A stretch of DNA of 64,000 nt from positions 124,001 to 188,000 of the IMG/VR virus record IMGVR_UViG_3300024503_000015, one strand, 5' to 3'. The position numbers were made by a program, and so were the translations under genes. The notes under the pieces are model-generated. The model was not told where the DNA came from and searched no databases. It saw only the letters and a list, made by a program, of their open reading frames with translations. Shown piece after piece: positions 25,586 through 45,981 of this stretch (positions within the stretch are counted from its first letter, which is position 1; each line of letters begins with the position of its first letter).

Positions 25586-26114
25586 TTGATAACCTGTGTT
25601 TCATTTCTATTTCTGTTTTAAACGGTCCTTCATACGGATAACGTTCGATAGTAATTAGTTTAGGACAGAAACTACGCACCCAACCTTTATCAAATTTAAT
25701 AATATAATATCCGGCGCAGTAAACACTTTTAGATTTATTACTCTTTGTAAACAACGGTAAATGACGTTTAACATCGAATAACGGATTGTATGGAAGTGTG
25801 CTAGTTGGATAACCGTGTACTTCTAAATCTTCTTCGGACTTAACTTTCTTTTCTAAAGTTTTCTTTATAAAAAATTCAGGACCAAATCGTTCTACAATTT
25901 TCTTTTTTGTATCGAATGTAGTAATAGCATTTTTAGAACTAAAGATATATTTCTTTTGTTCGGTGATTTTTAATACACCTACTTTATTGCCATTTTCTTC
26001 TACTATCCAAAACTTACCATCGACTACGGGTTTGGCGTGTATCTCTGTCATATTAGGACTCCAACAATTTTCTGTTTTGTTTTCACAAGTATCTTCGTAC
26101 TGGCAAATTTTCAT
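25572..26114 (-). CDS. Hypothetical protein, 180 aa (alternative start 26051)
   Basis: Co-oriented, overlaps the RNase H stop. Confidence 0.55.
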   Translation of the reverse strand: MKICQYEDTCENKTENCWSPNMTEIHAKPVVDGKFWIVEENGNKVGVLKITEQKKYIFSSKNAITTFDTKKKIVERFGPEFFIKKTLEKKVKSEEDLEVHGYPTSTLPYNPLFDVKRHLPLFTKSNKSKSVYCAGYYIIKFDKGWVRSFCPKLITIERYPYEGPFKTEIEMKHRLSNARK

Positions 26115-27079: not shown

Positions 27080-27528
27080 GAAACCTCAGACTTGCCTTCG
27101 GCAATCTTTTTAACATTAATAAATCCAGCACCTCTATCTGACATATCGATGCCCTCTTCGCTGGCTACATTTTTGCATAGTTCTCTAAACCAACGATCCA
27201 CAATTTCTTCATCAGGATCGCCATCAAATCCATAACCCGCTTGTTTTAATTGTACTACAAATTCATCGTTCCAGTCAATCTCGAAGAAACCATTCTTTAA
27301 GTTATCTTTATTGACATGTGTCTCCAAAACAGCGACCCAAGGTTCTCCTTTGGCTGTAGCACGGTCTTTTGGAGTCATTTTAGCCAATTCTTCTTCGCGT
27401 TTGGCTACTGCTTCTTTGGCTGTTGCTTCTTCAGCACGGGCAAGTGCTTCTGCACGTTCTTTTTCTAGACGTTCTTTTTCTGCTTCTAATTTGTCTATGC
27501 CAAATAATTTTTTAATAATTGCTTTCAT
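27076..27528 (-). CDS. Hypothetical protein (start MKAIIKK)
   Basis: GGGGG RBS before the ATG at 27528; N-terminal coiled coil. Confidence 0.55.
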   Translation of the reverse strand: MKAIIKKLFGIDKLEAEKERLEKERAEALARAEEATAKEAVAKREEELAKMTPKDRATAKGEPWVAVLETHVNKDNLKNGFFEIDWNDEFVVQLKQAGYGFDGDPDEEIVDRWFRELCKNVASEEGIDMSDRGAGFINVKKIAEGKSEVS

Positions 27529-28195
27529 GTTTCCCCCATACCCGCGATTGCGGATAAAAAAATGCGTTTTCGTTTTGCCCCATATCCCAAATAATACTGC
27601 CCATTGTATTTCTTTCATTTAGTGGCAACGATTGAATAAAAGTATTTGTACTATAACGAACACCTTTAGTTATTGGTTTAACTTCGTGTACCCAAAGAGG
27701 ATCTGCTGGAAAAATCATAGCATCTCCTTTATTCAATTTAACTTCGTATCTGCCATTCCAAAAAGTAAATTCGCCACCTTCATAGTCGTCATTTAATGAA
27801 ATAGTACAACTGGCGTGAATCATTTCCTCCCAATCCACATGAGGATGTATCCATTCGCCGACTTCGTATTTCATAAGTCGGTGCATGTGGGAAAATCTTA
27901 AAGATTTTTTTAATGCTGTAGTGTGAAACGCTTTAAACTCTTCTAGATATGTTATCCAATCTTCGATAATTTTATTTGTATGATTATGTACTACTAAAAA
28001 GTTTTCTGTATCAGGAATTAACTCTACTCTTTTAAAAGTAGAAGTAGTCATTTTATTAGTTACGGCGTGTATGCAACTTTCTTGAACCGCACTGGCAGAA
28101 CGCAATTCGTATTCGTCAATTAACGAATTGCATTGGTCTTCTGTTAATGCGTTTCTAACAACAAAAATTAAATCGGATAACTTTATATCTTCCAT
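27512..28195 (-). CDS. 2OG-Fe(II) oxygenase (prolyl-4-hydroxylase-like)
   Basis: HxD (HVD), LNDDYEGGEF, distal HEV, RYS 2-oxoglutarate ligand motif. Confidence 0.88.
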   Translation of the reverse strand: MEDIKLSDLIFVVRNALTEDQCNSLIDEYELRSASAVQESCIHAVTNKMTTSTFKRVELIPDTENFLVVHNHTNKIIEDWITYLEEFKAFHTTALKKSLRFSHMHRLMKYEVGEWIHPHVDWEEMIHASCTISLNDDYEGGEFTFWNGRYEVKLNKGDAMIFPADPLWVHEVKPITKGVRYSTNTFIQSLPLNERNTMGSIIWDMGQNENAFFYPQSRVWGKHESNY

Positions 28196-29059
28196 TTATG
28201 TTCCCCACTCATTTTTAAAGAGTGGAACTTGTAATCTATCGCTGTAGCGTAAACCGTTTTTCATTGCTAGTTCCGCTACACGCCTGTTGTTAAGAGTATA
28301 GACACTTTCAACGCCACCCACGGGCATAAGATATATAGGACCGGTAAAACCATTTTCTCTATAAATGTCAGCAGTTTCAATTGCTTCCTCCGCATCTTCT
28401 TCTGTGGCCACTACAAATTTAAGATATGTATGACCGTATTCTTCGTATTCACAAACTACGTCTGGACGAATTGCTTCGTGACGTTCTTCACCGGAGCAAC
28501 TTAATTTAGCACTAACACTAAATGTAACTTCTCGCCAAAAATCTTTATCGCTGTGATATTTCCATGTGTGCAGATATTGCTTGAACTCGTCGGTGAGTTT
28601 TTGAGTACCATTCGTTTCAAATGTAATCTCTTTTAAGTTTGTCATTTTTGGATGGTCGAGCAAGTCTGGATACGCTCGTTGCCATCCAAGCAAAGGTTCC
28701 CCTCCGGTAATGACCAAGTGTTCGTCTCGCCATTCGTTGAAGGGTAGAATCTCTGCGATCCTGTCTGCGATGGCGTCTGAAGTGAGCATTGGACTAAGAT
28801 CCTTAAAGCGAGGATCCCAACTAGCATAACTATCACAGCCCGTAGATACCAAAGGAAGTTCTTCATATTTTTTATATGGGGTTCGTTCATGTTGGATTGC
28901 AATATCTTCAACTTCTGTACTTAGTTCACCTTTTGGTAATCCAAAGCCAGCACATTTAAAGTTACAACCAAATGTTCTCAAGAAAACAGACGGTACACCC
29001 ATGTAACGTCCTTCGCCTTGAATACTATAAAATAATTCTGCAATTTTTAATTTGCTCAT
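28196..29059 (-). CDS. queE: 7-carboxy-7-deazaguanine synthase (radical SAM)
   Basis: ELFYSIQGEG, FLRTFGCNFKC...(insert)...CDS, ITGGEPLL, FETNGT, SDRLQVPLF. Confidence 0.92.
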   Translation of the reverse strand: MSKLKIAELFYSIQGEGRYMGVPSVFLRTFGCNFKCAGFGLPKGELSTEVEDIAIQHERTPYKKYEELPLVSTGCDSYASWDPRFKDLSPMLTSDAIADRIAEILPFNEWRDEHLVITGGEPLLGWQRAYPDLLDHPKMTNLKEITFETNGTQKLTDEFKQYLHTWKYHSDKDFWREVTFSVSAKLSCSGEERHEAIRPDVVCEYEEYGHTYLKFVVATEEDAEEAIETADIYRENGFTGPIYLMPVGGVESVYTLNNRRVAELAMKNGLRYSDRLQVPLFKNEWGT

Positions 29060-29843: not shown

Positions 29844-30049
29844 GTCTCCAACCATTTATCAAGAATATTTACAGCATCATTGAAATCGATACCATATACT
29901 TCTGCACTGATAACATTGTCTTTGATTTGTATATCAAACGGAACAGTTCCGTTAAATCGAAAATCTTCGGGAACATCTGTCTCTACAATATACTTGTGTA
30001 GATTTTTTGCTCTATTAATTAAATTAGTCGCCATGTCTACTGAATTCAT
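29834..30049 (-). CDS. Hypothetical protein, 71 aa
   Basis: Coupled ATGA overlap with folE. Confidence 0.45.
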   Translation of the reverse strand: MNSVDMATNLINRAKNLHKYIVETDVPEDFRFNGTVPFDIQIKDNVISAEVYGIDFNDAVNILDKWLETCK

Positions 30050-30744
30050 CTTGGTGCAAACTCCTGTTGTAGTTTAATGTTATCAAAGAACTCTTTCTTT
30101 GTACCAGCATCGTCTTTGAACGCACCTTTAAGTACAGTAGTTTGAGTTAATGAACTATGTGCCATAATGCCACGATTCTCACAGCATCCATGAACTGCCT
30201 GAATATAAACGCCAATATCACTTGCGCCAGTGGCCTTTTCAATTTCTCTGGCTATGTCGTTACACAATTCTTCCTGTAAGGTACCACGACGAGCGCACCA
30301 TTGCGCGATTCGTGTGTATTTTGACAGCCCAATGAGTTTTTGGGCGGCGATGATTCCGATGTAGGCAACACCAGAAACAGGCTGATGATGATGACTACAC
30401 ATACTACGAAGCTCACTCCTAACCACCAACATACCCTCATAACGATCTTCGCTATCGTTAGGAAACGCTGTTGCATCTGGTGCTGGTTCATATCTTCCTG
30501 CCATTATTTCGTTAAAGTACATTTTTGCTAATCGTTTCGCTGTACCGTGCGAGTTAGGATCTGTCTCTCTGTCAATAAGAAGTTTGTCTAAAACACTTTC
30601 AAATGCCTCAGTTGCTTCTTTGATTAGTTGTTCTTTGACTAGATCAGATTCGATGTATTCGCTGATGTTATCTCCTGCCCAGAATCTTTTTCCGTCTAGG
30701 ACCATCTTTTCGCGAATCGCTTGTGCTAAATTTTTTTCTGACAT
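30046..30744 (-). CDS. folE: GTP cyclohydrolase I
   Basis: SMCSHHHQP, GLSKYTRI, RRGTLQE, AVHGCCENRG zinc-ligand motifs. Confidence 0.95.
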   Translation of the reverse strand: MSEKNLAQAIREKMVLDGKRFWAGDNISEYIESDLVKEQLIKEATEAFESVLDKLLIDRETDPNSHGTAKRLAKMYFNEIMAGRYEPAPDATAFPNDSEDRYEGMLVVRSELRSMCSHHHQPVSGVAYIGIIAAQKLIGLSKYTRIAQWCARRGTLQEELCNDIAREIEKATGASDIGVYIQAVHGCCENRGIMAHSSLTQTTVLKGAFKDDAGTKKEFFDNIKLQQEFAPR

Positions 30745-31380: not shown

Positions 31381-31744
31381 TTTTATAATTTCCTTTACTT
31401 GGTATAACGTGACGAACCCCGCCACGAGGGTCTTCCATATCACCCTTGCGTCTAGGGATCATGTGTATATGAGGATACATTACTGTTTGGCCAGCAGTCT
31501 CGCCACAGTTTTGTCCGACATTAAAAGCGTCCCAACGTTCAGATTGGACACCATCGAACCCGAACTTGTATGCTCCTTTGAAACATTCGACGATGTTGGT
31601 AAAACGTTCATAGGTTGGCACAAAAAGCAAATGTCCTTCCGTAACTGGGTAGGCATCGTTGAAGACCCAATAGTCTTTTGTTCTGTACTCGATACTAGTC
31701 CATGGTGCTCTGCGTTCATCTAGTGCCCTTTCTAAATCAGTCAT
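31361..31744 (-). CDS. HIT-family nucleotide hydrolase
   Basis: YPVTEGHLLFVP, GQTVMYPHIHMIPR histidine triad; start MTDLE at 31744. Confidence 0.9.
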   Translation of the reverse strand: MTDLERALDERRAPWTSIEYRTKDYWVFNDAYPVTEGHLLFVPTYERFTNIVECFKGAYKFGFDGVQSERWDAFNVGQNCGETAGQTVMYPHIHMIPRRKGDMEDPRGGVRHVIPSKGNYKNASKST

Positions 31745-32292
31745 AACCAAAATTCTTCCCAAGGATAAACAAGCCAACAATCTTCTTGTCGCTTGTCTAC
31801 GGTCCAAACATGATAGTCTGGATCTTTAAACTCACTGCCGTAATTATGTGTTAATACAGCAAAACGAACATTGTCTCCCCATACTTGATTCCATGCTTCA
31901 TCGTTAGGAAAACAACCACTGGGCCAATCTTTCTTAATCCAATTAAGAGTAGATCCTTGATCGTTAATATCGTCTACAATTAAGATTTTCTTTTTAAGAC
32001 GTTCTAAATGTTTGTGATCGCCCCAAATGTGCCTTTCGTCATTGGGAACAACTCCCAAGGCATCTTCGGCCATCCAAAGATTACTTTCGCAATCGTTTTT
32101 ATTATCGCGAAGGCTGACATTAAGTGTGTGCATCTTAATGCCAGTATATTGACTTAGTAAGTTAGCCGGAACAAGACCACCGCGTGTAATACCTACAATA
32201 TAGTCAGGCCTCCAATTATGTTCAGACATTTGGCGAGCAATTTCTAAACATGCGCCTTCAACTTGTGACCAACTGTAGTATACTTTCTTCAT
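31741..32292 (-). CDS. Type I phosphoribosyltransferase (xanthine/guanine PRTase-like)
   Basis: IVGITRGGLVPA and PRPP loop LIVDDINDQGST; C-terminal VYPWE; start MKKVY at 32292. Confidence 0.85.
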   Translation of the reverse strand: MKKVYYSWSQVEGACLEIARQMSEHNWRPDYIVGITRGGLVPANLLSQYTGIKMHTLNVSLRDNKNDCESNLWMAEDALGVVPNDERHIWGDHKHLERLKKKILIVDDINDQGSTLNWIKKDWPSGCFPNDEAWNQVWGDNVRFAVLTHNYGSEFKDPDYHVWTVDKRQEDCWLVYPWEEFWL

Positions 32293-32525
32293 GCAGTTAA
32301 CCCATAGGCCAATGATTGACATTCTTCTTTAGTCATAAAGAAATTATAAGTTTGTGTACCAACAACTTCACCGTCTTTAAGACTTTCTTGAACCATATCG
32401 ATACTAAACAAACCTTTAGGGCTTAGTACTTCGTGTTTCTTTAATGTTAGCCTAAAACCGGCGTGTTCTTTGACAACCATTTCTTTATAAGTATCTCTAA
32501 CTGATTCATGTAGTTCCATCATCAT
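32289..32525 (-). CDS. Hypothetical protein, 78 aa
   Basis: Co-oriented ORF. Confidence 0.5.
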   Translation of the reverse strand: MMMELHESVRDTYKEMVVKEHAGFRLTLKKHEVLSPKGLFSIDMVQESLKDGEVVGTQTYNFFMTKEECQSLAYGLTA

Positions 32526-32958
32526 CTCCTTTAATTGCGTCCCACGTTCTATATTTGGCTAATGCCTTAATATAGTCATCATACATCTTTTTTAACTTTG
32601 GATGCTTCTTTTCTAGTTTAACATCTCGCTCGGGAATTTGCAAGACTTTTTCAATTGTGTTTAACCTTTCTTCTAGGTCAACACCATTTAATACCATTCG
32701 ACCTTTAACTTCTAACTCCGGTGGATCGTTTTTGGCAACCATCACCGGATTGGTAGTAGGATTAGCCCAAGTTACATTTGTACCTGTAGTATAAGTTAAC
32801 GGCACAGATGTAGTGCCGGCTCCGGTTGAAATCGTATATCCACTGCCAGAGCCGCCTGTGCCGTTCGATACTAAAACACTACCTGAACCGGCACCGGAAC
32901 CTGCTATGCCGCCGGCTGTATTAAGTATTACGCTTCCGTGATTGTAAGTATAGCTCAT
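32506..32958 (-). CDS. Hypothetical protein with Gly/Thr-rich N-terminus
   Basis: Co-oriented ORF. Confidence 0.5.
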   Translation of the reverse strand: MSYTYNHGSVILNTAGGIAGSGAGSGSVLVSNGTGGSGSGYTISTGAGTTSVPLTYTTGTNVTWANPTTNPVMVAKNDPPELEVKGRMVLNGVDLEERLNTIEKVLQIPERDVKLEKKHPKLKKMYDDYIKALAKYRTWDAIKGDDDGTT

Positions 32959-33376
32959 TTGGTATCCATTTATTATTAACGAGAAATCCCCATTCTCTCT
33001 TTTGCGGACCTGGCATAAAAAGTGTCCAACACTCTACGTTGGGATCAATTTCAATTCTATGAAAACTGTTGGCACTACAAATTCTAAAGTGTCCAGGCTT
33101 TCTCCATTTGGCAATTTCACAGACCTTTACTCCCTGGCTGTTAAATTGAGGAATCCATTCCCAATAGCCACCTTTTAGAATAAGTGTGGCATAAGGCCAT
33201 GGGTGATCATGCACATCATCTGGATCACCTTTATGAAACTTGTGTAAGAATACATTAAATGGAAACCATTTACGATCCTTTAAAAATAGATAATAACGTG
33301 TAAGTAACGGCTCGTCACAGGTACGATCCATAATAATACGCTTGCGACCGAGACGTTCTAACAGTTTTAATATCAT
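32921..33376 (-). CDS. Cupin-fold metal-binding protein
   Basis: LHKFH...VHDHPW...LKGGYWE...FHRI...WTLF double-stranded beta-helix pattern. Confidence 0.7.
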   Translation of the reverse strand: MILKLLERLGRKRIIMDRTCDEPLLTRYYLFLKDRKWFPFNVFLHKFHKGDPDDVHDHPWPYATLILKGGYWEWIPQFNSQGVKVCEIAKWRKPGHFRICSANSFHRIEIDPNVECWTLFMPGPQKREWGFLVNNKWIPNELYLQSRKRNT

Positions 33377-34446
33377 ACAAGTCTTTCTAAGAGTCCATTT
33401 GCAGAAAAGAAATTTTCAGTTAAGTCTTGAGTTTGTTTTCTAAGTTGTGGTAAAAACTTTTCATAGTTATCCATATACTGGATAATCTTTGCACATATTT
33501 CTGGACGGTGTGCTTTATATGCTTCGAAACTTTCAGTCCATTCACTAGGATACTTAAAAGTATCATAGCCCATTTCACTGTAACTAAGTCTATCTGGCAC
33601 CATAGGAATAGCATCTACAACAGCGCCTTCATACCAACTAATCCCTAATGTCTCTTGTAAGTTTGCAGAGAACACTAATTTCGATTCGCCTAACAAGTTA
33701 TGATATTCATTTTTTGTTAGTTGTTGATCCTGACAGACTACGAACTCGTACTGTGGCAAGTGTTCTTTTAAATCTCTAAAAATTTCAACTTGCTTCTCGG
33801 GTGCGATGCGATGAGGGAAAAGAATTAAATCACGTTTTTTCATCCCTTTATATGGAGTTAATGTATCTTCCATATACTCCATTGGCCAACCTGTGCGTAC
33901 AATTTTTCCTTTATCGATATATGATGCTTTTGCAGTATCGTAATCTATGTTTAAAAGATTATGACAAAACATTTCAATATGGAATGTTGTAGCAAAGTAG
34001 TTATGATCTATAGCATGAAAGAAACTCTTTTCAGCATTTCTGACCCAAGGAGCATCGCCAATTAGACGACCTAAAAAGTCCTGTGGATCGTAACTACCGG
34101 CATGCCATAGTGCGTGAATAGTTACAGGAATCTGTAACAGTTCACTCATATACTTTAGGTTGATGATACCAGGGTGCCAAGCATCAGTAAAGATGAAGTG
34201 ATCATTAGGAGCCACTGATCCGGCGCAAAACAACCTACCCATTTGCTCAACTTGAGCAGACTTGTATATATTGGTGCCACCAAAATTAAGAAAAGCACCA
34301 GGAGTAGTGGCTGAAGGAATATCCGTAGGCCCAGATAAAACTTGAACATCGTGTCCTCTCTTTCTCAGGATAGCCGGTAGGTGGGTCTTCCACTGCGCTG
34401 TATAGCGTGTTTCTACCGGCTCAAGGTCTACTAAGTAGACGGTCAT
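33373..34446 (-). CDS. GT-B glycosyltransferase
   Basis: C-terminal FPHRIAPEKQ and FSANLQETLGISWYEG resemble the GT-B R/K and E-x7-E donor-binding motifs. Confidence 0.75.
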   Translation of the reverse strand: MTVYLVDLEPVETRYTAQWKTHLPAILRKRGHDVQVLSGPTDIPSATTPGAFLNFGGTNIYKSAQVEQMGRLFCAGSVAPNDHFIFTDAWHPGIINLKYMSELLQIPVTIHALWHAGSYDPQDFLGRLIGDAPWVRNAEKSFFHAIDHNYFATTFHIEMFCHNLLNIDYDTAKASYIDKGKIVRTGWPMEYMEDTLTPYKGMKKRDLILFPHRIAPEKQVEIFRDLKEHLPQYEFVVCQDQQLTKNEYHNLLGESKLVFSANLQETLGISWYEGAVVDAIPMVPDRLSYSEMGYDTFKYPSEWTESFEAYKAHRPEICAKIIQYMDNYEKFLPQLRKQTQDLTENFFSANGLLERLV

Positions 34447-34676
34447 TGGCGACCATTCCTGTAGTTGTTATTGTACCCGTTGTTATTACGGGGACGATTT
34501 TCAAATCGTCTGTCGTTGTTATAACGACGAGGACGCTTAGACGCCTCGTAAGCCTGCCAAGTTTTACTTTGGCGGTTATACAAGTCTGCCTCATTGTAAG
34601 GCAGAAGGTTGAATCTGCAAAAATCTAGCAGATTGTCAAGATCGTCAAAAATTTGAACGACTTCTTTTTTCATCAT
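34443..34676 (-). CDS. Hypothetical protein, Arg/Asn-rich tail
   Basis: Co-oriented, coupled overlap. Confidence 0.5.
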   Translation of the reverse strand: MMKKEVVQIFDDLDNLLDFCRFNLLPYNEADLYNRQSKTWQAYEASKRPRRYNNDRRFENRPRNNNGYNNNYRNGRQ

Positions 34677-34684
34677 TGTTTCCT

Positions 34685-35080
34685 TTAGTATTTGATGAAT
34701 GAACCATTTTCTCCGTCTTCGGAGACCTCAATCCAAATCTCGCGATTTGGATACTTCTTGCTAATGATGTCATGTAATTCGTCAGACATCATTTCACAAC
34801 TCTTGTAGTCAAGGCTTATAGTGGCACCTTGACCATTATACAACGACTCGAGCCATCGTTTGAATTGGATGAATTCGATGTCCCTGTCATTGTGTTGCAC
34901 ACTGATCCACACCCTGAAATGAAAGATGTGGCGATGAGGGTGACCCAAAAACGATACGTCATATTCGTCTCCTGTTGCTAGATTAGGATCTGTTAGTGCC
35001 GCAGGATACTTATGGATACCTTCTTTGCGGAAAGTTACCCAGATCATTTTGTTTGGTCTAATGTCTTGTTTGATAATCAT
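34685..35080 (-). CDS. QueD-like T-fold protein with LxxxHRHxF motif (DpdL-like candidate)
   Basis: FLGHPHRHIFHF in place of QueD CxxxHGH; SCEM substrate-Glu motif; start MIIKQ at 35080. Confidence 0.7.
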   Translation of the reverse strand: MIIKQDIRPNKMIWVTFRKEGIHKYPAALTDPNLATGDEYDVSFLGHPHRHIFHFRVWISVQHNDRDIEFIQFKRWLESLYNGQGATISLDYKSCEMMSDELHDIISKKYPNREIWIEVSEDGENGSFIKY

Positions 35081-35616
35081 GTTGGTGTATCTTGAGTGTA
35101 CAAATCCCAATGAGTATACTTGTCTTTAGTCATTAGGCTTTGTAAATGATGTGTCCACACACCTGGATTTGTAGCACCCCAAGTTCGGTCATCCAGTTTG
35201 AGTGTGGCATTGTAGTTGAGTTGATTAATGTAGGGTAACTTGACACTAATCATAGGTACAAACTTGGGATATTCGTTATAAGCAGACTCTAGTACGCCTT
35301 CGATGTGTTCAACACCAAAGTCTAGAGCTACCCAATAGCCTGCTTTTAGACAGCCTATAATAACTTCGTCCCATGCTTTGTATTCTTCGTGTGAAATACT
35401 TTTAGGATTAAAACTTTGACTAGTGCCAAAGTAAATTTGTTTAATGCGTTTGTTTTCGTCTAAGTATGCTTGTGTGTCACCAGCAATACGTAGTATTTCT
35501 TCTAGCGGAGGAGTGCCTACTACAAATAGTGTATACATACCATAGCAAATAGTATGTTCGACTTCGTAGCCTGTAAAGTAGACAATGTCTTGTCTTTCTT
35601 CAGTGTTTAATCCCAT
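35077..35616 (-). CDS. Uncharacterised protein embedded in the deazaguanine cluster, 179 aa
   Basis: Coupled to both neighbours; no motif recognised. Confidence 0.6.
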   Translation of the reverse strand: MGLNTEERQDIVYFTGYEVEHTICYGMYTLFVVGTPPLEEILRIAGDTQAYLDENKRIKQIYFGTSQSFNPKSISHEEYKAWDEVIIGCLKAGYWVALDFGVEHIEGVLESAYNEYPKFVPMISVKLPYINQLNYNATLKLDDRTWGATNPGVWTHHLQSLMTKDKYTHWDLYTQDTPT

Positions 35617-36497
35617 TTAATATAACCTCTGCTATAACCATTTGGACGATCCACACCATCCGCAAATGCTTGTTGCCATTCTGTGTTACGATTATAACCT
35701 TTTGTCCAGAAAGAATCAACCTCTAGTTTACCGTTTTCAATCATCCAACGTGCTTCAAACATAGCACCAATAAATTCTTCTGTTCTTGGACTTGGTTTAA
35801 CTGTAGTAACAGCCTTCCAAAGTTGTTGTTGTGCTTCTTCTTTACTTACTGCTTTACCAACAGCATCAATGATTACTGCATTGTTATTTAGATTAATGTC
35901 GGTACCTAGTTGATATTTTCCAGATAAATCTACTATCAAATCGTAACTGTCGGTAGTACCTAACAGTAACGCATCTCCCCAAAGTTCCTGATTACTAGAA
36001 CCTAGTACATCTACTTCAAGTTCTGGAAAATGATGTGCCAGGTTATTAAAAACTACCCATGCAAGGAAACCACTACCTAGGATTAAGCATTTACCATTTT
36101 GTCTACGTTCAAAAAGAGTATACGCTTGTCTAATACAGTTAACACCACAGGCCACTGGTTCTAAAATGTAACGTGGATGTAGTTCTAAAACTGTTACAAA
36201 CTCACCGTCACGACAGTTGTAATAATCTGCGTATGCTGGTTCGCCGCGGGTAGCAACATAATCGCCTACTTTAACACCTAATACACTGGCACCGACTTTA
36301 GTTACGATTCCTAGACCTTCGTGACCTTGCATGTGTAGTGGTAAAGGTCCAAAGTTGCCCTGCATCATATCTATGTCACTGCGACATACACCAGTCATAA
36401 CTGCTTTAACTTCAATTTCAGTTGACGTAGGTTCTGGCTTTGCATATTCTACTTCTTCAAAGTAACCTTGTCCAGTTGTTTGTAGACAGCGTGTCAT
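35607..36497 (-). CDS. Zn-dependent medium-chain dehydrogenase/reductase
   Basis: GVCRSD, GHEGLG catalytic Zn ligands, ILGSGFLA Rossmann; no structural-Zn Cys loop; start MTRCL at 36497. Confidence 0.85.
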   Translation of the reverse strand: MTRCLQTTGQGYFEEVEYAKPEPTSTEIEVKAVMTGVCRSDIDMMQGNFGPLPLHMQGHEGLGIVTKVGASVLGVKVGDYVATRGEPAYADYYNCRDGEFVTVLELHPRYILEPVACGVNCIRQAYTLFERRQNGKCLILGSGFLAWVVFNNLAHHFPELEVDVLGSSNQELWGDALLLGTTDSYDLIVDLSGKYQLGTDINLNNNAVIIDAVGKAVSKEEAQQQLWKAVTTVKPSPRTEEFIGAMFEARWMIENGKLEVDSFWTKGYNRNTEWQQAFADGVDRPNGYSRGYIKWD

Positions 36498-37372
36498 AGT
36501 TTTTCTATTCTTTCGTGTATCCAAAGGTCAATTTCTAACTGTACTTTCCAGTACTCGTCATTATTTAGGTTTTCTACAGCATCTTTAATCATATTTAGGT
36601 ACGCTTCTTCTGGACACCAGCCTAACTCAAATACATCTTTGGTATTATCTTGATTAATAAATGTAATAGCACTACGTTCAACAGTCATACTGCGCCAGTT
36701 AGCACGGCAGTTCCATTTAGAACCAAATCCAATGTGACACTGGTCGTCTACATCATAAGTTCCATTTGGGTTTACAGTACCATACTCTGTGCTTTCGATA
36801 TCTTTTAACAGCCATGATTGTATAGATGATTCGCCGTTAACTTTTTCTATGCGCCAGTCTGGATGTAGTGCAATATACAAACTTAATAAGTGTGGCATTA
36901 AGTCCCTACTAACTCCGCCAAATGCTAGTTTGCGTGTAGTAAACCAACTACCTGGGCTAGGAATACAGTTCTTTCTAATCCATTCGATGTCTACATTCTT
37001 TGCTACTTTAGCCTTTTCCTGTAATTCTGCAATATTGTCACGCCACATATTATTTTTAACCATCATAAATCGTGTGCGTGGAAATCTTTTACATAATTTA
37101 GCCCATTCGTTTCTATTAATCAGTCCAGGCTTTTCAATAAAGACAATTTTACTGATAGGAGCCAGTTTAACGGCTAATTCTAAATGCGTAAAATTTGGTG
37201 TGCAAATATGTACGGTGTCAAAAGACCCGTGAAGTAATATGGCTGGTTCTATACTAGGGAAGTCGGCATTTTTATTAATGTCTGTATCGACAGTACAAAC
37301 TTCATAACCTAATTGAGTTAGGACAGATTTATATAACTGTCCTATTCCCATTCCTACAACTAAACTTTTCAT
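36494..37372 (-). CDS. Gfo/Idh/MocA-family oxidoreductase
   Basis: VVGMGIG, VHICTPNFTH, FIEKP, GGVSRDLMPH. Confidence 0.87.
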   Translation of the reverse strand: MKSLVVGMGIGQLYKSVLTQLGYEVCTVDTDINKNADFPSIEPAILLHGSFDTVHICTPNFTHLELAVKLAPISKIVFIEKPGLINRNEWAKLCKRFPRTRFMMVKNNMWRDNIAELQEKAKVAKNVDIEWIRKNCIPSPGSWFTTRKLAFGGVSRDLMPHLLSLYIALHPDWRIEKVNGESSIQSWLLKDIESTEYGTVNPNGTYDVDDQCHIGFGSKWNCRANWRSMTVERSAITFINQDNTKDVFELGWCPEEAYLNMIKDAVENLNNDEYWKVQLEIDLWIHERIEKL

Positions 37373-37626
37373 CTATATGTTGGTAGTTCGTTAACACATT
37401 TAATAAGAGATCCGGATTGTTTGCCCGCTAATTGATGTAGCGCATAATCCGGAGAGGATACACAGGCTTCGTGCCCATTGAATTTATCTGCTAGGGCAAT
37501 GGTGTTGCCAGTTTCTGCAAATTTAATTACAAGATAGTAGTCGTTTGGACCCACGGCATCTGCCGTTTTATAAAACAAACCAAAACTTAATACTGCTAAA
37601 ACACCAATGCCTAGTAGTTTTTTCAT
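37369..37626 (-). CDS. Small exported protein, 85 aa
   Basis: Signal peptide MKKLLGIGVLAVLSFG; two Cys. Confidence 0.55.
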   Translation of the reverse strand: MKKLLGIGVLAVLSFGLFYKTADAVGPNDYYLVIKFAETGNTIALADKFNGHEACVSSPDYALHQLAGKQSGSLIKCVNELPTYR

Positions 37627-39170
37627 TTTACGCCTTCTTCGAGTTCGTCAAGTTTAGCAATTTCATCATCGGTAAATTCTTCACCGTGCTCTAATTGTAC
37701 ACTCTCTTCCTCTACTTCGTCAAACAGTTTGGCAAATTGTGTACTTGCGTTTACAGTCTTCTTACCTACTGCTCCGCGAGTTCCAATAATACTTTGCCAA
37801 AATTTATTATACTCTTCAACGACTTTGTCTGCTTCTGCACGACTACTAGTAGCAAAAATGGCTTCTACTACATCTTTAAAGAATAGTCTATCAAACCGTT
37901 CTTCTACTAACATAGCAGGAACAATGCCCAAATCGTATTGACGATTGGCTTCTTGTACAGCATTAATGTGCATCCAAACATTATGGCCCATTAAGATAGC
38001 GTAACTAAAACTATCCCACGAAGTTTTACCTTCCTTGCCAATCTTGTTTAGATCCCCGGGCCCGTAAATACAAACATCTTTAATTTGAACCCCGTCAATA
38101 ATTGGACTATTGTCAAAGTTTTTAAAATGTCCGTCCTGTACTACTGCATCGCGGAATAGTCTAGTATCTTTACTATATTTTTTATTATCGATACTAGGTA
38201 ACATTCTATATACCCACTTAGTTCTGTCTTGTGTTTCTGTTTGAACGTATACTTGTCCGTTTGCAGTTGCTAAGAATGGACTAGCACAGTCGAAACTAAT
38301 TGTAAAGTTAGGATTGTGATACTTGCGTACAGCACGTTGAATGTCTGTTAATAAACAAGCCCACTCTAATTTACTAGTACCTAAGAAGTGCATCCAGTCT
38401 TGTTTGCCCTGTTCAAGTAATCCGTCAAATCGTAATGCTACTAGGCGTTTTAATACCAAGTGTACATCACACATATTCTGACCACCCATGGCCCAACCGT
38501 TAAATGCACGGTCACCGTAGACAGTAGGATCGCAGTACTTCTTCATTCGGTCATACCAATCGTCTGCATCGGTATGATTTTCACCTTGGAGAACGTTTAA
38601 GAATTTACAATTACCATTGCGATTGTTTACAAACCAATCGTTGTTAATGTAAGTACCTTGAACTGCTTCTGCGTATGTAGTAATGCCTGTGGCTTTTTGT
38701 CCAGCAGGGCTACGAGCTACCCAAGCAGGGATATCAAGACACATACCATAGTCCATTAGACTATCCATCCACTTAAGAACCTGTTCACGTTTCTTTTGTG
38801 CTTTAGGACAGTTGGGATTCTTCCAATCGCCTTCCCATACACCTTTACCAATTTGGAAACCACCGGAGTCGCCTAGTACCCAACTAGTACTGCGATCTCT
38901 ATTACGAAACATATCTTCGCTGTGATCAACTTTGTTAAGGTCTAGATTAGCATGACCTGCACTATACAAGCAGTGGTCATAGTAGAACGCACCTTTTTCC
39001 GGTTCTAAGTAGTTTAGACTTTCTACTCCGTTTTTAAAACTAGCAGGAACTCTTGCCGGATCAACATAGTTTCCATATCTTTGTTTACCTATAAAGGTAC
39101 TATAGAAACCGCTAGTTGCCGGCAAAAAGTATGCGTAGTCGTTTTGTGTTGCGGTTAAATTTTTATTCAT
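37623..39170 (-). CDS. TGT/DpdA-like base-exchange transglycosylase
   Basis: GDSGGFQIG (TGT catalytic Asp motif), LDIP, NVLQG, GWAMGG, HFLG, SFDCASP, late GHN; no CxCxxC Zn cluster of tRNA TGTs visible. Confidence 0.82.
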   Translation of the reverse strand: MNKNLTATQNDYAYFLPATSGFYSTFIGKQRYGNYVDPARVPASFKNGVESLNYLEPEKGAFYYDHCLYSAGHANLDLNKVDHSEDMFRNRDRSTSWVLGDSGGFQIGKGVWEGDWKNPNCPKAQKKREQVLKWMDSLMDYGMCLDIPAWVARSPAGQKATGITTYAEAVQGTYINNDWFVNNRNGNCKFLNVLQGENHTDADDWYDRMKKYCDPTVYGDRAFNGWAMGGQNMCDVHLVLKRLVALRFDGLLEQGKQDWMHFLGTSKLEWACLLTDIQRAVRKYHNPNFTISFDCASPFLATANGQVYVQTETQDRTKWVYRMLPSIDNKKYSKDTRLFRDAVVQDGHFKNFDNSPIIDGVQIKDVCIYGPGDLNKIGKEGKTSWDSFSYAILMGHNVWMHINAVQEANRQYDLGIVPAMLVEERFDRLFFKDVVEAIFATSSRAEADKVVEEYNKFWQSIIGTRGAVGKKTVNASTQFAKLFDEVEEESVQLEHGEEFTDDEIAKLDELEEGVK

Positions 39171-40528: not shown

Positions 40529-43198
40529 TTAAAACTCAAACAGTTGATTAAATGTGTTCTTTTCTTCTGTGGATTTAATATCCCAGTTAAGAACTCCAAT
40601 TAAGTTTTCTAGTTTGTTATCTATAATAGTTTGTTCCATTTCTGCATCGTCGAATGGAAGTTCCATAAACCATTTAGGCAAACGTAGTTCGTCTACAGGA
40701 TATGCTACCGATGTGTACCCTAGCGGATTTGCTTTGAGTTTACATACAATAACTTTTTGGCCGTCTGTGACCTGCATACTATACTTGTCCGAATTCATTC
40801 GACGCAGAGTATTCCAATTAATACTTGCACGAACGTGTCCAGGCATATTAGCCTTGCCCTGTTTCTTTTCTTTGGCTTCGTACTCAGTAATGTTGTTGGC
40901 TCGCTTAGGAGAACCTTTCTCCCAACCAGGACGGGCCTTAAACTCTGTACGGAATTGAGTAATGTGATCTAATACTTGTTCTTCTGTAGCACCAGTTAGA
41001 ACTTTCTCAAGTACATCACTTAAAAAGTCTTGAATAAATGCAGGAGTATCACTGCGCTTCAAGTCTAAGCCCATGGCCTTGATCTTGCCTGGTTTACCAT
41101 CTACGTCTGCACGTTTGCCTTCTTTATCATAGTAAAGTACAGCATAACGTTTCTTAGTAATAAACAATCCTTTACTAGCAACAATTTCTCGACCTGCTCG
41201 AATAACATCACCACGACTTGGCGGGCAATGAAATGCCTGCTCCATAAACTTAACGAATGTACTGTTTACTTCCTCGCCAATTTGGTCATAGAGTGCAGTA
41301 ACGTTTTCCTTAGTCCAAGGAATAACTCCAGATTCGATGTCTTTCTTTAATGTAGTATATGCACTGAAATAACAAGAGTCTGTATCACCATAGATAACTG
41401 CCTTACCTACGTGATTGTATTCACCTGTGATAATTTCATTTACTTTACTAGCCATGTGTTTGGCAATTTGTCTACCGACTAGAGTAGTTGACTGTCCAAT
41501 ACGTTTATCGAAGAATCTACAACCTGGGTTAAGAATAGCACCATACAAACTGTTCAAGTTAATCTTTTTAACTAACTGACGTTTATCCCAATACTCTTCT
41601 TCGACCTTGTTACCTGCCTGAATACATTCTTTTAATTTGGCCTGCATTTCTTTACGTTCAGCATACCAACGCTTTAACAGTCCAGGAATAATACCTTCCT
41701 TTTCGTAGGTAAAGATTGTACCATTTGCCGAAAGCATCCAAGGCTGATGACTATCAAAAATAACTTTATATACTTCTGCACCACTGTGTACAGTACTGTT
41801 GCCATCTTCCCAGTCTATGGTAATTTCCACATCTTTACGTTGTGCCATAACTGCTTCGTATTCGTCAGTTCCAAACTTGCCTTCCCAACTGCCTGCAAAC
41901 GATTTCTTTTTAAGAGTCATTTGTTCATGGATAAATGCTTCTGTCATTGTAGGACGTAATTGACCTACAATAGTTTCCGGACCCATGTTAAGCGCACGAA
42001 TGGCGCTTGGATAAAGACTGTTAATATCCAGCGATCCAATCCAATCTTGCAGACCTTCTTTCGGATGTGCTACATAAGCACCAGCAGCCGCAGTATTTTC
42101 ATCGTCATCTCGTTTAGGACGATTAGGAACTTGGAAACCTCTACGATGCGCTTCGTTAATAATAGCCTGTTCGGTAACAGCCACAGCACCCATTGTAGTC
42201 TGTAATAATACAGTATTTTCATGTGCAATTTTATTAGCAAGGTCAATGAATTTAAGTTTTTCATCTAGTTTGTTTAATAGTGCAACGTCTTGTCTGTTAT
42301 ACACAATAAATCTTTTAAAGTCATTGTTGTATAGTTGATCAAGTGTGCCTTCGTAAACAGTTTTGTTCTCGCCAATTTCCATTTCACCGATGGCATCTAA
42401 TCGATAGGTGTGTCGTTCTTCGTAGGTAAACTTGCGATAAAGTTCTAGACTGTCTAAGTGTACACGACCAATTAAGTCATATGTTTGTGCAGTCTTGCCA
42501 TACTTTTCATATTCTCTACGTTTAGGAAATTGATTCCATAGACAGAAACGTCTTGTATCTTCTTTACTTAACACCTGTGTCACACGGTTAACAGTATAAG
42601 GAATATCATAGCCTTCGCTGTTCCAACCTGTGATAATGTCTGCATCTTGAATTAAATCTAAGAATGTTTCCAACATATCTGCTTCATTAGTAAACAGATG
42701 TGTATCTGGAATATCGGCTACTAACGCTTCGGCTTCAGCAAAGGTTAATGTCTTTGGAGGAAGAGCCAGTGTAATTAATTTGTCTAACCATTTTAGGTGA
42801 ACTGTGATAGCAGTAATTGGCATAAACGCATCTTCAGGAGTGCTATAGCCGCGTTCTGGATCGAAGTCCACCTCAATGTCGAAGAAGCAAATATTTAGAT
42901 TAGGTGCATCTTGATTTAGATAGTTTTCGCTTAGATGTACAAAAATTGGATTGATGTCGCTTTCGTATAAGTCCTTACCACTGTTAATGGCTAATTCTTT
43001 TCGAAAGTCTTTGGTGTTTTTACAAACTACCCTAGTCAGCGGATCGCCGTAAATGCTAGTAAACTTGCCTTTTTGATCCGGATAGTAAAACGTGTAGCGT
43101 ACAGGATGTTCTTTGAAAACCCGTTCGCCTTGGTCGTTTCGCTCTACGACCTTAATAATATCATTCTCTCTGTCAAAGAGAGCGTCAACGTAACTCAT
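40529..43198 (-). CDS. Family B DNA polymerase (T4 gp43-like), no intein
   Basis: Exo motifs FFDIEVD, GWNSEGYDIPY, YNRQDV; Pol motifs SLDINSLYPS, KINLNSLYG, YGDTDS, KKRYA. Confidence 0.96.
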   Translation of the reverse strand: MSYVDALFDRENDIIKVVERNDQGERVFKEHPVRYTFYYPDQKGKFTSIYGDPLTRVVCKNTKDFRKELAINSGKDLYESDINPIFVHLSENYLNQDAPNLNICFFDIEVDFDPERGYSTPEDAFMPITAITVHLKWLDKLITLALPPKTLTFAEAEALVADIPDTHLFTNEADMLETFLDLIQDADIITGWNSEGYDIPYTVNRVTQVLSKEDTRRFCLWNQFPKRREYEKYGKTAQTYDLIGRVHLDSLELYRKFTYEERHTYRLDAIGEMEIGENKTVYEGTLDQLYNNDFKRFIVYNRQDVALLNKLDEKLKFIDLANKIAHENTVLLQTTMGAVAVTEQAIINEAHRRGFQVPNRPKRDDDENTAAAGAYVAHPKEGLQDWIGSLDINSLYPSAIRALNMGPETIVGQLRPTMTEAFIHEQMTLKKKSFAGSWEGKFGTDEYEAVMAQRKDVEITIDWEDGNSTVHSGAEVYKVIFDSHQPWMLSANGTIFTYEKEGIIPGLLKRWYAERKEMQAKLKECIQAGNKVEEEYWDKRQLVKKINLNSLYGAILNPGCRFFDKRIGQSTTLVGRQIAKHMASKVNEIITGEYNHVGKAVIYGDTDSCYFSAYTTLKKDIESGVIPWTKENVTALYDQIGEEVNSTFVKFMEQAFHCPPSRGDVIRAGREIVASKGLFITKKRYAVLYYDKEGKRADVDGKPGKIKAMGLDLKRSDTPAFIQDFLSDVLEKVLTGATEEQVLDHITQFRTEFKARPGWEKGSPKRANNITEYEAKEKKQGKANMPGHVRASINWNTLRRMNSDKYSMQVTDGQKVIVCKLKANPLGYTSVAYPVDELRLPKWFMELPFDDAEMEQTIIDNKLENLIGVLNWDIKSTEEKNTFNQLFEF

Positions 43199-45941: not shown

Positions 45942-45981
45942 AGCCATCTTCCTCTGGGTAAACTGGATATTCGTTTTCCAT
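45907..45981 (-). CDS. Micro-ORF, 24 aa (MENEYPVYPEEDGYDRPRNPYSPV)
   Basis: ATG overlaps the dps stop (TAATG), suggesting translational coupling. Confidence 0.5.
   Translation of the reverse strand: MENEYPVYPEEDGYDRPRNPYSPV

Follow-up and report, generated by a model that had tools for sequence, protein, structure and literature searches.

Among the closest known systems to the gene set studied here is the DpdA3/DpdL system of Cellulophaga phage phiST (Cui, Hutinet et al. 2023; PMC10516641), in which FolE, QueE, a DpdL protein with an LxxxHRH signature and the TGT-like transglycosylase DpdA3 accompany DNA that carries plain 7-deazaguanine (dDG). In other deazaguanine clusters, which follow the QueC/QueF branch, the accessory enzymes DpdM and DpdN decorate the base further by methylation and formylation of dPreQ1 (PMC10516641). 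Sugars on phage DNA are known from the T4 alpha- and beta-glucosyltransferases (AGT and BGT), which act on 5-hydroxymethylcytosine, and the phage DNA glycosyltransferases known so far act on hydroxymethylated pyrimidines. The only known glycosylation of a 7-deazaguanine derivative inside a nucleic acid is that of queuosine in vertebrate tRNA by QTMAN (GTDC1, a GT4 enzyme) and QTGAL, which mannosylate and galactosylate it. Here, we show that an uncultured giant phage, and cultured relatives such as Pseudomonas phage PA5oct, keep a predicted glycosyltransferase (GT) closely linked to the genes inferred to exchange guanine in DNA for 7-deazaguanine, suggesting, although this is inferred from gene content and linkage, a sugar-decorated deazaguanine. 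In the literature we searched, no paper describes a glycosylated 7-deazaguanine in DNA.

Gene content of the locus

We analyzed a 64,000-nucleotide stretch of IMG/VR record IMGVR_UViG_3300024503_000015 (positions 124,001 to 188,000; hereafter the window). A preliminary description of the sequence had noted a GT-B enzyme, a Zn-MDR and a Gfo/Idh/MocA enzyme, mostly linked by overlapping stop and start codons, between a T-fold gene and a DpdA-like gene. We found the following features:

37623-39170, minus strand: DpdA-like DNA guanine transglycosylase (515 aa), a distant TGT relative allied to DpdA3
37369-37626, minus strand: o85, a small ORF with a signal-peptide-like N-terminus, probably not part of the system
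36494-37372, minus strand: Gfo/Idh/MocA NAD(P)-dependent oxidoreductase (292 aa), accessory
35607-36524, minus strand: Zn-type MDR dehydrogenase/reductase (305 aa as listed; probable start at the ATG at 36497), accessory
35077-35616, minus strand: o179, a conserved protein without an assigned fold, core in this clade
34685-35110, minus strand: DpdL-type QueD paralogue, the proposed 7-carboxy-7-deazaguanine decarboxylase (probable ATG at 35080)
34443-34676, minus strand: o77b, a small basic protein (pI 9.7) with an Arg/Asn-rich tail, translationally coupled to the GT
33373-34446, minus strand: GT4-type (GT-B, retaining) glycosyltransferase (357 aa), candidate tailoring enzyme of the deazaguanine pathway
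32921-33376, minus strand: metal-binding cupin (151 aa), translationally coupled to the GT
31741-32322, minus strand: purine-type phosphoribosyltransferase (PRTase)
30046-30744, minus strand: FolE, GTP cyclohydrolase I
28196-29059, minus strand: QueE-like radical SAM enzyme (7-carboxy-7-deazaguanine synthase)
27512-28195, minus strand: 2OG-Fe(II) oxygenase abutting QueE, a strain-specific extra

The observation is therefore confirmed: the three enzymes are present at these limits, the 4-nt ATGA-type overlaps are real, and the genes are conserved in hundreds of related viral contigs, so that these are not chance ORFs. The arrangement, however, required correction. The three genes are not contiguous, as o179, the T-fold gene and o77b lie between the MDR and the GT, and the order is DpdA-o85-Gfo-MDR-o179-DpdL-o77b-GT-cupin. 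Thus, the redox pair lies between DpdA and the T-fold gene, whereas the GT lies on the far side of the T-fold gene. Moreover, the T-fold gene is DpdL rather than QueD: its LGHPHRH motif matches the LxxxHRH signature of DpdL, it is 57% identical to the ACP17 protein at the DpdL position and 34% identical to the phiST protein, and it matches phrog_17812 at 6.5e-34.

The DpdA-like protein gave no Pfam or PDB sequence hit, but its motifs GDSGGFQ (D101) and SFDCASPF (D294) are invariant in 20 relatives, and a profile comparison with the DpdA3 group, which includes the ACP17 protein, gave 98.7% probability (E 1.7e-16). PA5oct EST35_0316 is a 33% homologue that lies next to the GT. FolE matched PF01227 (1.4e-38). 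The NCBIfam QueE models matched the QueE-like protein at 3e-13 to 4e-10, all below their cut-offs, but it is homologous to the annotated QueE of PA5oct, ACP17 and BUCT-ZZ01. The PRTase (PF00156, 2e-13) recurs in the cluster (49 of 85 and 57 of 83 loci) and is annotated as xanthine-guanine PRT in BUCT-ZZ01. The cupin matched phrog_4786 (4.6e-35), with weak Cupin_2 matches in the PDB, and is present in 73 of 85 loci but was not detected in the PA5oct, Phosso or ACP17 loci, whereas o77b, which shares a 4-nt overlap with the GT start, is present in 78 of 85. In contrast, the oxygenase (PF13640, 1.9e-11) is present only in the three near-identical contigs, and o85, although joined to its neighbours by 4-nt overlaps, was found at 100% identity only in near-identical contigs, plus one 36% match.

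The glycosyltransferase is predicted to be a GT4 enzyme

To examine the GT further, we combined family searches with structure prediction. The window protein itself has no Pfam hit, but 28 of 48 family members hit PF00534, and the AF2 model (pLDDT 95.9) is a GT-B/GT4 fold with Z scores of 24-26 to sucrose-phosphate synthase (SPS), BshA and MshA. The EX7E motif (E265-x7-E273) and the R/K residues (R213 and K218) are conserved. The preliminary description had invoked T4 AGT and BGT as precedents, but the GT is not AGT- or BGT-like: neither T4 enzyme was found in PDB sequence searches (single sequence or profile, E up to 10) or among the 50 best fold matches listed. Its nearest structures (BshA, MshA, SPS, OtsA and GlgM) use small soluble acceptors, and the family is acidic (median pI 5.7), which fits a free-base or metabolite acceptor at least as well as DNA. 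DpdA itself is equally acidic, however, so charge says little.

The glycosyltransferase is linked to 7-deazaguanine genes

We next asked whether this linkage extends beyond the window. The GT family is large (1111 clusters at 50% identity), and its members lie beside DpdL and/or the DpdA3-like transglycosylase in six cultured phage lineages (the PA5oct group, Phosso, ACP17, BUDD/X1, BCSR5 and BUCT-ZZ01), spanning phages of Pseudomonas, Sinorhizobium, Acidovorax, Xanthomonas, Burkholderia and Synechococcus. The same holds for metagenomic relatives with 31-38% identity, and in a divergent set of viral contigs, 52 of 56 GT genes had DpdL within 1.5 kb. The GT is often directly coupled to the transglycosylase (DpdA-GT or GT-DpdA overlaps), translational coupling is tight across the block, and the GT is its best-conserved gene (77-100% identity, against 39-100% for DpdA). 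The cluster lies in the replication module, and the position of the GT between DNA polymerase and RNase H is conserved in the window, its environmental relatives, PA5oct and Phosso. In addition, one relative has ManC next to the GT, and two loci carry two GT paralogues.

The distribution of the two genes is nested. In the phage database, 18 records have DpdL plus GT, 10 have DpdL only and 5 have only a distant GT; phiST is among the phages with DpdL but without the GT, whereas close GT relatives rarely occur without DpdL. The DpdL of the GT-less phage RHph_I1_18 (59.5% identity) is closer to that of the window than is the DpdL of PA5oct (54%), so DpdL looks like the same enzyme in both groups and the GT is an add-on. 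This nesting is what a downstream tailoring enzyme would show.

The Gfo-MDR pair is a lineage-specific accessory

The Gfo protein scored 25.8 bits against PF01408 (cut-off 24) and carries EKP and D-x3-H motifs (GGVSRDLMPH), and the MDR matched ADH_N at 5e-12 and carries GVCRSD, GHE and GSGFLA. Both are short, divergent family members that score near or below the Pfam cut-offs, and their substrates cannot be read from sequence. The best solved relative of Gfo is DgpA, the glycoside 3''-oxidoreductase (2.6e-7), which oxidises the sugar of aryl glycosides, whereas the MDR matches aldehyde/alcohol dehydrogenases generically. About one locus in eight of the two GT-based samples carries the pair; it is absent from Phosso, ACP17, BUDD, BCSR5 and BUCT-ZZ01 and from most environmental relatives. 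Where present in viral contigs, it lies in the order DpdA-Gfo-MDR-o179-DpdL-GT (80 of 80 contigs, with the MDR adjacent to Gfo in all and DpdA detected upstream in 78), while in PA5oct it forms a separate Gfo-MDR-o179 triad. Independent occurrence of the three genes in relatives had been named in advance as grounds for rejecting a link with deazaguanine, but we never found Gfo-MDR away from a genome with the DpdA/DpdL/GT set.

The o179 protein is present in 73 of 85 loci. It is linked to Gfo-MDR in PA5oct, where EST35_0364 lies next to the pair, and to DpdA3 in ACP17, where a 132-aa ORF lies upstream of DpdA. We obtained no family hit, and the model (pLDDT 69.5) gave no significant fold match: three QueE structures came near the top of a wide fold search (Z 5.7-6.4, QueE first at 6.4), but these values are in the noise range and hhalign against QueE gave 1.5%.

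A proposed pathway and its alternatives

The best explanation is that the region belongs to a phage DNA-hypermodification operon. Based on gene content, we infer that FolE, a QueD function that we did not find in this window, and QueE make 7-carboxy-7-deazaguanine, that DpdL removes the carboxyl group, an activity proposed rather than demonstrated (PMC10516641), and that the DpdA3-like transglycosylase exchanges guanine in DNA for the resulting 7-deazaguanine, the base expected since no QueC was seen in the window. We propose that the GT then transfers a hexose from an NDP-sugar onto the deazaguanine unit, most likely after insertion into DNA, or alternatively on the free base or a nucleotide before insertion. 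In the sub-lineage that includes this window, Gfo/Idh/MocA would oxidise a sugar hydroxyl and the MDR would reduce the resulting ketone with inverted stereochemistry, thereby remodelling the attached or donor sugar, with o179 taking part in an undefined step. Such a second layer would protect deazaguanine DNA from enzymes that have learned to recognise it, and glycosylases that destroy dDG-DNA exist (bioRxiv 2025.10.29.685425), which gives a selective reason for it. In support of a modified guanine, PA5oct DNA, of uncharacterised chemistry, resists five G-containing restriction enzymes (PMC12191111). It is important to point out that our analysis establishes gene identities, folds, motifs and linkage, whereas every chemical step, the acceptor atom, the donor sugar and whether DNA is the acceptor at all are inferred, without mass-spectrometric or biochemical data for any GT-bearing phage. 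Furthermore, 7-deazaguanine has no hydroxyl group, and a retaining GT4 would need an unusual N-, O6- or C-linkage or an unrecognised hydroxylated intermediate. We regard this proposal as about as likely as not. The preliminary interpretation, that the three enzymes may make an unusual sugar donor and attach it to the deazaguanine or another base, is thus supported only in part: the GT is tied to the 7-deazaguanine genes, but the three genes are not one unit.

Alternatively, the GT might glycosylate a soluble pathway molecule (free 7-deazaguanine or CDG, a tetrahydropterin intermediate or a deazaguanine nucleotide) that serves as a pool, carrier or regulator, the DNA base itself carrying no sugar. 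The small soluble acceptors of the nearest structures and the acidic family would fit this reading, as would the constant presence of a T-fold pterin/purine binder as its neighbour and the recurrence of a PRTase, which in one instance (L094) lies with a NUDIX gene next to a GT relative. We nevertheless consider it unlikely, though the foremost of the alternatives, given the direct coupling to the DNA transglycosylase, the position in the replication module and the lack of an obvious benefit of a soluble glycoside for a lytic phage. It is also possible, but less likely still, that Gfo-MDR-o179 act on the deazapurine or pterin skeleton, for example by reducing or oxidising a side chain, to create the handle used by the GT or an alternative base. 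The association of the core protein o179 with Gfo-MDR in PA5oct, its weak resemblance to QueE and the generic MDR matches are compatible with this. However, the QueE resemblance was not upheld, most GT-positive phages lack Gfo-MDR, so the pair cannot supply an obligatory handle, and Gfo/Idh/MocA enzymes characteristically act on sugars and cyclitols.

Two further readings appear very unlikely. The GT might modify another DNA component, such as a hydroxymethyl-pyrimidine as in T-even phages, and merely share a modification island with the deazaguanine genes, since modification genes often cluster. Yet the window has a canonical thymidylate synthase (ThyA, 362 bits) with DHFR and no hydroxymethylase, so that no such acceptor is visible, the repeated adjacency is specifically to DpdL across lineages with otherwise different gene content, the GT is nested within the DpdL-positive set, and the PA5oct restriction data point to modified G. 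Similarly, the GT might act on a host envelope glycan or on a phage or host protein, with Gfo-MDR serving general sugar or redox metabolism: GT4 enzymes are mostly envelope or metabolite glycosyltransferases, JGI auto-annotation calls relatives 'glycosyltransferase involved in cell wall biosynthesis', and the distant PhiXhv-12 relative lies with GlmS and a deacetylase rather than with deazaguanine genes. Against this stand the linkage to DpdL/DpdA across phages of six host genera, the conserved position between DNA polymerase and RNase H, and the fact that Gfo-MDR was never found outside this context.

Comparison with described systems

The proposed second sugar layer on an already modified base recalls T4, where a phage-encoded GT-B enzyme also acts in a DNA-modification context, but the family here is GT4 and the presumed acceptor is a deazapurine without a hydroxymethyl handle. 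QTMAN and QTGAL act on tRNA and on the hydroxyls of the queuosine cyclopentenediol side chain, which is absent here. Like DpdM and DpdN, the GT would be an accessory enzyme encoded in the deazaguanine cluster, although those proteins differ in chemistry and fold and in following the QueC/QueF rather than the DpdL branch. BshA, MshA and SPS share the EX7E and R/K motifs and are the best structural matches, at 9-14% sequence identity, but their acceptors (malate, inositol phosphate and fructose 6-phosphate) and biological contexts are unrelated. The Gfo protein shares with DgpA-type glycoside 3-oxidoreductases an NAD(P) Rossmann domain with EKP and D-x3-H motifs, at only 33 bits to DgpA and with 292 aa against about 360, and an oxidase paired with a reductase, as in IolG/IolW-type pairs, is a classical route to sugar or cyclitol epimers, the partner here being a Zn-MDR. 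Finally, the locus shares with phiST FolE, QueE, a DpdL with the LxxxHRH signature and a distant transglycosylase related to DpdA3, with no QueC seen in the window. Whereas phiST has no GT homologue at the search threshold, here a GT4 enzyme, o179 and optionally Gfo-MDR are added, and the transglycosylase belongs to a longer (about 515 aa), separate sub-group that Pfam TGT does not detect.

Gene content and order of the region

To establish whether the genes of the preliminary description exist and how they are arranged, we annotated the open reading frames of the window and read them in the direction of transcription. From about 19.4 kb to the end of the window all genes run on the minus strand, and the region of interest is organized as follows.

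Genes of the region, in the direction of transcription (all on the minus strand)
40529-43198: PolB
o244, o117 and o84: three ORFs
37623-39170: DpdA-like protein, 515 aa
37369-37626: o85
36494-37372: Gfo/Idh/MocA oxidoreductase
35607-36524: Zn-MDR, likely ATG at 36497
35077-35616: o179
34685-35110: putative T-fold protein (DpdL-type), likely ATG at 35080
34443-34676: o77b
33373-34446: predicted glycosyltransferase (GT)
32921-33376: cupin
small ORFs
31741-32322: phosphoribosyltransferase
30046-30744: FolE
small ORFs
28196-29059: QueE-like radical SAM protein
27512-28195: 2OG-Fe(II) oxygenase
26111-27079: RNase H-type 5'-3' exonuclease

Most junctions from DpdA to the cupin are 4-nt ATGA-type overlaps. 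We found all of the motifs reported in the preliminary description (GVCRSD, GHE, EKP and GG..D..H), and its observation of a glycosyltransferase, a Zn-MDR and a Gfo/Idh/MocA enzyme is therefore confirmed. One correction is needed, in that three further ORFs lie between the MDR and the GT, and the T-fold gene lies inside the interval.

Elsewhere in the window, a single ORF of 4160 aa occupies the first 12.5 kb on the opposite strand (85-12567, plus strand) and is presumably a giant virion or injected protein of a jumbo phage. A canonical thymidylate synthase (362 bits) overlaps DHFR (19362-20682, minus strand) at the point where the coding strand switches. The phage also encodes a ClpB-like double-AAA chaperone, a full DnaJ and a ferritin-like protein (56051-58291, 58771-59595 and 45981-46415, minus strand). 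In Pseudomonas phage PA5oct a homing endonuclease gene splits the family-B DNA polymerase (positions 2608-7834 of locus L001, our PA5oct stretch), whereas the window's orthologue (40529-43198) is intact.

Predicted identity of the encoded proteins

The window GT has no Pfam, PHROG, NCBIfam or PDB sequence hit of its own (no Pfam PF00534 hit at E up to 0.1; no PDB chain at E up to 10 with the single sequence), but an exhaustive HMMER search found 1111 clusters at 50% identity with E up to 1e-3, and 28 of 48 diverse family members hit PF00534 (Glycos_transf_1), with a best value of 3e-08. An AlphaFold2 model built on that alignment (pLDDT 95.9) shows two Rossmann-like domains in the GT-B arrangement. 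The top Foldseek and VIA structure matches are all GT4 retaining enzymes (sucrose-phosphate synthase, BshA, MshA, GlgM and PimA), at Z 21-26 (maximum 25.8) over about 300-317 residues. The EX7E motif and the Arg/Lys pair of the C-terminal domain, assigned by eye, are conserved in the 48 diverse members (E265-x7-E273, with E273 invariant and E265, R213 and K218 at 90% or more). The aromatic residues Y15, W19, F52, W90, Y99 and W134 are invariant. Neither of the T4 glucosyltransferases, AGT and BGT, was found in the single-sequence search or among the five chains returned by a profile search of the PDB, and neither is among the 50 best fold matches listed.

The putative T-fold protein carries LGHPHRH (window position 34948), the only motif in a long ORF of the window that matches LxxxHRH, the signature that Cui, Hutinet et al. 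give in place of the QueD motif CxxxHGH for DpdL, their proposed 7-carboxy-7-deazaguanine decarboxylase (PMC10516641). It is 57% identical to the ACP17 ORF at the DpdL position and 34% identical to the phiST ORF next to MazG. Pfam PTPS does not match it, and an hhalign comparison with three phage QueD sequences gave 36% probability (E 4e-4) over only 38 C-terminal columns. In the 515-aa DpdA-like protein, the TGT-type motifs GDSGGFQ (D101) and SFDCASPF (D294) are invariant in 20 sequences and align with the same motifs of the DpdA3 group. A profile of the DpdA3-type proteins of ACP17, BUDD, BCSR5 and BUCT-ZZ01 matches it at 98.7% probability (E 1.7e-16), although Pfam TGT does not detect it and a profile of the family gave only chance hits against PDB sequences. 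We found no QueC and no canonical QueD (CxxxHGH) in the 64-kb window although FolE, QueE and DpdL are encoded; QueD is either elsewhere in the genome or supplied by the host. Gene content therefore implies 7-deazaguanine (dDG), as measured in phiST DNA, which is naturally 100% dDG.

The MDR has a GroES-like domain (ADH_N, 5.1e-12) with the GVCRSD and GHE motifs of the catalytic Zn ligands. For its C-terminal part, a GSGFLA motif is visible but no Pfam hit was obtained, and PDB matches cover only residues of about 10-109. The Gfo protein matches PF01408 at 25.8 bits against a cut-off of 24 and contains FIEKPG, while its C-terminal domain reaches only 14.8 bits against PF22725, below the cut-off of 27, with RDLMPH seen by eye.

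Linkage of the glycosyltransferase to deazaguanine genes

A megablast of the region against 50,697 phage records found no nucleotide-level match, and only protein-level searches revealed relatives. The window is distantly syntenic with the Pseudomonas jumbo phage PA5oct and Sinorhizobium phage Phosso, and in six cultured phages the GT lies inside a deazaguanine cluster.

Arrangement of the GT in cultured phages
PA5oct: DpdA-like, GT and DpdL are consecutive genes (EST35_0316-0318), with QueE four genes further on
Phosso: DpdL-GT, then FolE and QueE
ACP17: QueD, FolE, o179-like, DpdA3, GT, DpdL, QueE in a row
BUDD: FolE ... GT-DpdA3-DpdL-QueE
BCSR5: QueD-DpdL ... GT-DpdA3 ... QueE ... FolE
BUCT-ZZ01: QueE-PRT-QueD-FolE ... 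DpdA3-DpdL-GT

Metagenomic GT representatives only 31-38% identical to that of the window again lie next to a DpdL (loci L089, L091, L093, L095 and L096). In 83 further viral contigs recovered with distant queries, 77 hold DpdL, and 52 of the 56 GT genes with at least 1.5 kb on both sides have DpdL within 1.5 kb; a further scan of viral contigs (query P0267) found nothing. In the phage database the two gene sets are nested, as 18 records have both genes, 10 have DpdL only (the phiST group, RHph_I1_18, Ahp1, Bakedbeans, D479 and MA9V-3) and 5 have only a distant GT of about 25% identity. The one of these five that was examined, Xanthomonas phage PhiXhv-12 (locus L088, 4669-7903), has its GT relatives with GlmS and a BshB-like deacetylase instead of deazaguanine genes, which is a different, also uncharacterised, sugar module in jumbo phages. 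DpdL similarity does not separate GT-positive from GT-negative phages, since the DpdL of RHph_I1_18 is 59.5% identical to that of the window and the DpdL of PA5oct 54%. This asymmetry is what a downstream tailoring enzyme would show. Within the window's own clade (80 contigs), the GT is the most conserved protein of the block, at 77-100% identity against 39-100% for DpdA and o179.

Variants of the cluster were also observed. Two viral contigs carry two GT paralogues in one deazaguanine cluster (GT ... DpdL-GT-DpdA; L195, 619-1653 and 5498-6481; L202, 8001-9038 and 12857-13870), which recalls the paired glucosyltransferases of T-even phages and may mean a disaccharide or alternative anomers. 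In locus L095, a GDP-mannose pyrophosphorylase/PMI (ManC-like) gene (9122-10519) lies immediately downstream of a 38%-identical GT that itself follows DpdL, which hints at GDP-mannose as the donor in that lineage. In the 7-kb contig L094 (845-6333), where no DpdL is present, a 35%-identical GT lies next to a second GT4 gene and, on the other strand, a PurT-like ATP-grasp enzyme, a PRTase and a NUDIX hydrolase, possibly a nucleotide-level variant of the pathway.

The redox pair and other neighbouring genes

In the 80 closest GT loci, Gfo and MDR appear in only 9-10. Searching with Gfo gave a complementary picture, as 143 viral stretches were recovered and in all 80 retained loci the MDR is adjacent, with DpdA detected upstream in 78 of them and the order always DpdA-Gfo-MDR-o179-DpdL-GT. 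In PA5oct the pair lies 26 kb from DpdA-GT-DpdL, but it keeps o179 as its immediate neighbour (EST35_0362-0364). A tblastn search found no Gfo or MDR homologue in Phosso, ACP17, BUDD, BCSR5 or BUCT-ZZ01. The pair is thus an accessory sub-module that was never seen outside genomes with the deazaguanine/GT set, and it is not needed wherever the GT occurs. The best solved relative of Gfo is DgpA (2.6e-7), which oxidises the 3''-hydroxyl of aryl glucosides, and the MDR matches alcohol, threonine and inosose dehydrogenases only through its GroES-like domain. An oxidise-then-reduce sugar remodelling is a reasonable reading but remains an inference.

The o179 protein is conserved and carries many invariant acidic and aromatic residues, but searches of Pfam, PHROGs and NCBIfam gave no hit, an Atlas search returned only unnamed clusters, and Foldseek found nothing significant with its mediocre AlphaFold2 model (pLDDT 69.5). 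In a wide VIA search of 48,161 PDB chains, three QueE structures rank 1st, 4th and 7th (Z 5.7-6.4), which is curious given the context but within noise, and hhalign against QueE gave a probability of only 1.5%. We therefore rejected the idea that o179 is a QueE paralogue, and it remains only a lead. The cupin and o77b are translationally coupled to the GT. The cupin was detected only within this clade and shows no BLAST similarity to the PMI-like cupin next to a distant GT, so that we dropped the idea of a mannose-phosphate-isomerase-type cupin. The 77-aa o77b is basic (pI 9.7) with an Arg/Asn-rich tail, is conserved in 78 of 85 related loci, and could be a nucleic-acid-binding partner of the acidic GT. 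By contrast, o85, which has a signal-peptide-like N-terminus (MKKLLGIGVLAVLSFGLF...ADA) and is wedged between DpdA and Gfo, is found at full identity only in the near-identical contigs, with one 36% match in locus L010, and looks like a moron insertion. The 2OG-Fe(II) oxygenase directly abuts QueE and is present only in the three contigs nearly identical to the window, where it could add a further strain-specific step, perhaps a hydroxylation, to the pathway. A purine-type phosphoribosyltransferase recurs inside the cluster (31741-32322 in the window; 2084-2545 in locus L087) and is annotated as xanthine-guanine PRT in BUCT-ZZ01. We infer that it recycles the guanine released by base exchange into GTP, the pathway's precursor, although a role in making a deazaguanine nucleotide is not excluded.

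A proposed pathway and its alternatives

In the best-supported model, GTP would be converted to CDG by FolE, a QueD function and QueE, CDG would be converted to 7-deazaguanine by DpdL, the DpdA3-like enzyme would exchange the base into DNA, and the GT4 enzyme would then glycosylate the deazaguanine unit. In some lineages Gfo-MDR would remodel the sugar, or a second GT would add to it. What our analysis establishes is the identity, motifs, modelled fold and linkage of the genes, while all of the chemistry, including sugar transfer from an NDP-sugar by the GT, base exchange on DNA by the DpdA-like protein and decarboxylation by DpdL, whose activity has never been shown, is inferred. Two external observations fit this model. 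The authors of a study of PA5oct suspected a 7-deazaguanine-type G modification, but did not analyse its DNA by MS or note the GT (PMC12191111). In addition, integron-borne glycosylases destroy dDG-containing phage DNA (bioRxiv 2025.10.29.685425), which gives a selective reason for a further layer.

Other readings of the GT must be weighed against this model. 7-Deazaguanine offers no hydroxyl, so the linkage would be unusual, and the nearest structures of the GT use small soluble acceptors. Glycosylation of a free base, a nucleotide or a pterin-type intermediate is a serious rival. The GT family is also acidic, but we discounted overall pI as a way to tell DNA from small-molecule acceptors because DpdA is just as acidic. 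A hydroxymethyl-pyrimidine acceptor is argued against by the canonical ThyA plus DHFR and by the absence of any hydroxymethyl-pyrimidine synthesis gene, at least as far as the 64-kb window of this roughly 330-kb genome shows. Taken together, the interpretation offered in the preliminary description, that the three genes may make an unusual sugar donor and attach the sugar to the deazaguanine or another base, is partly supported: the GT does belong with the deazaguanine genes, but the three genes are not a unit and the GT does not resemble the T4 enzymes named there as precedents. We are fairly confident that the GT functions within the deazaguanine module, whereas the proposal that it puts a sugar on the deazaguanine unit that ends up in DNA is tentative, at best about as likely as not.

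If this proposal is correct, which we regard as possible but slightly less likely than not, guanine in the DNA of these phages is replaced by a sugar-bearing 7-deazaguanine, made by a DpdL-coupled GT4 enzyme and varied in some lineages by epimerisation through the Gfo-MDR pair or by a second GT. The modification would be widespread in freshwater and marine jumbo phages and present in the therapy-relevant PA5oct, giving a concrete hypothesis for the uncharacterised G modification of that phage. A DpdL-coupled glycosyltransferase family with more than 1000 sequence clusters would mean an abundant, undescribed DNA hypermodification, and it would bear on restriction and glycosylase evasion, on sequencing bias in viromes and on enzyme tools for labelling deazapurine DNA. 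It may also explain why DpdL plus DpdA3 from Acidovorax phage ACP17 failed to give dDG in E. coli, since two conserved genes that flank DpdA3 in that phage, the o179-like ORF and the GT, which is directly followed by DpdL (locus L004, 8236-11401), were left out of that experiment. The size of the family, and the fact that the prediction is immediately testable in at least six cultured phages, make it of high interest.

Comparison with known systems

Eight 7-deazaguanine derivatives are known in phage DNA (PMC10516641), none of which carries a sugar, and all known glycosylated DNA bases are pyrimidines, so that a sugar-bearing 7-deazaguanine would be the first glycosylated purine analogue in any DNA. 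Full-text literature searches found no paper linking a glycosyltransferase to DpdA or DpdL, or reporting a glycosylated deazaguanine in DNA, although the library searched is incomplete and prior description elsewhere cannot be excluded; the 2023 paper that defined DpdL does not contain the string 'glycosyl' in its main text. The core of the cluster (FolE, QueE, DpdL and a DpdA3-like enzyme) is a member of the known dDG-type systems. By its predicted fold and motifs the GT is a member of GT4, and it is not a member of the T4 AGT or BGT families. Glycosylation of a 7-deazaguanine derivative in a nucleic acid is known only for queuosine in vertebrate tRNA (QTMAN and QTGAL), where the sugar goes on side-chain hydroxyls that are absent here.
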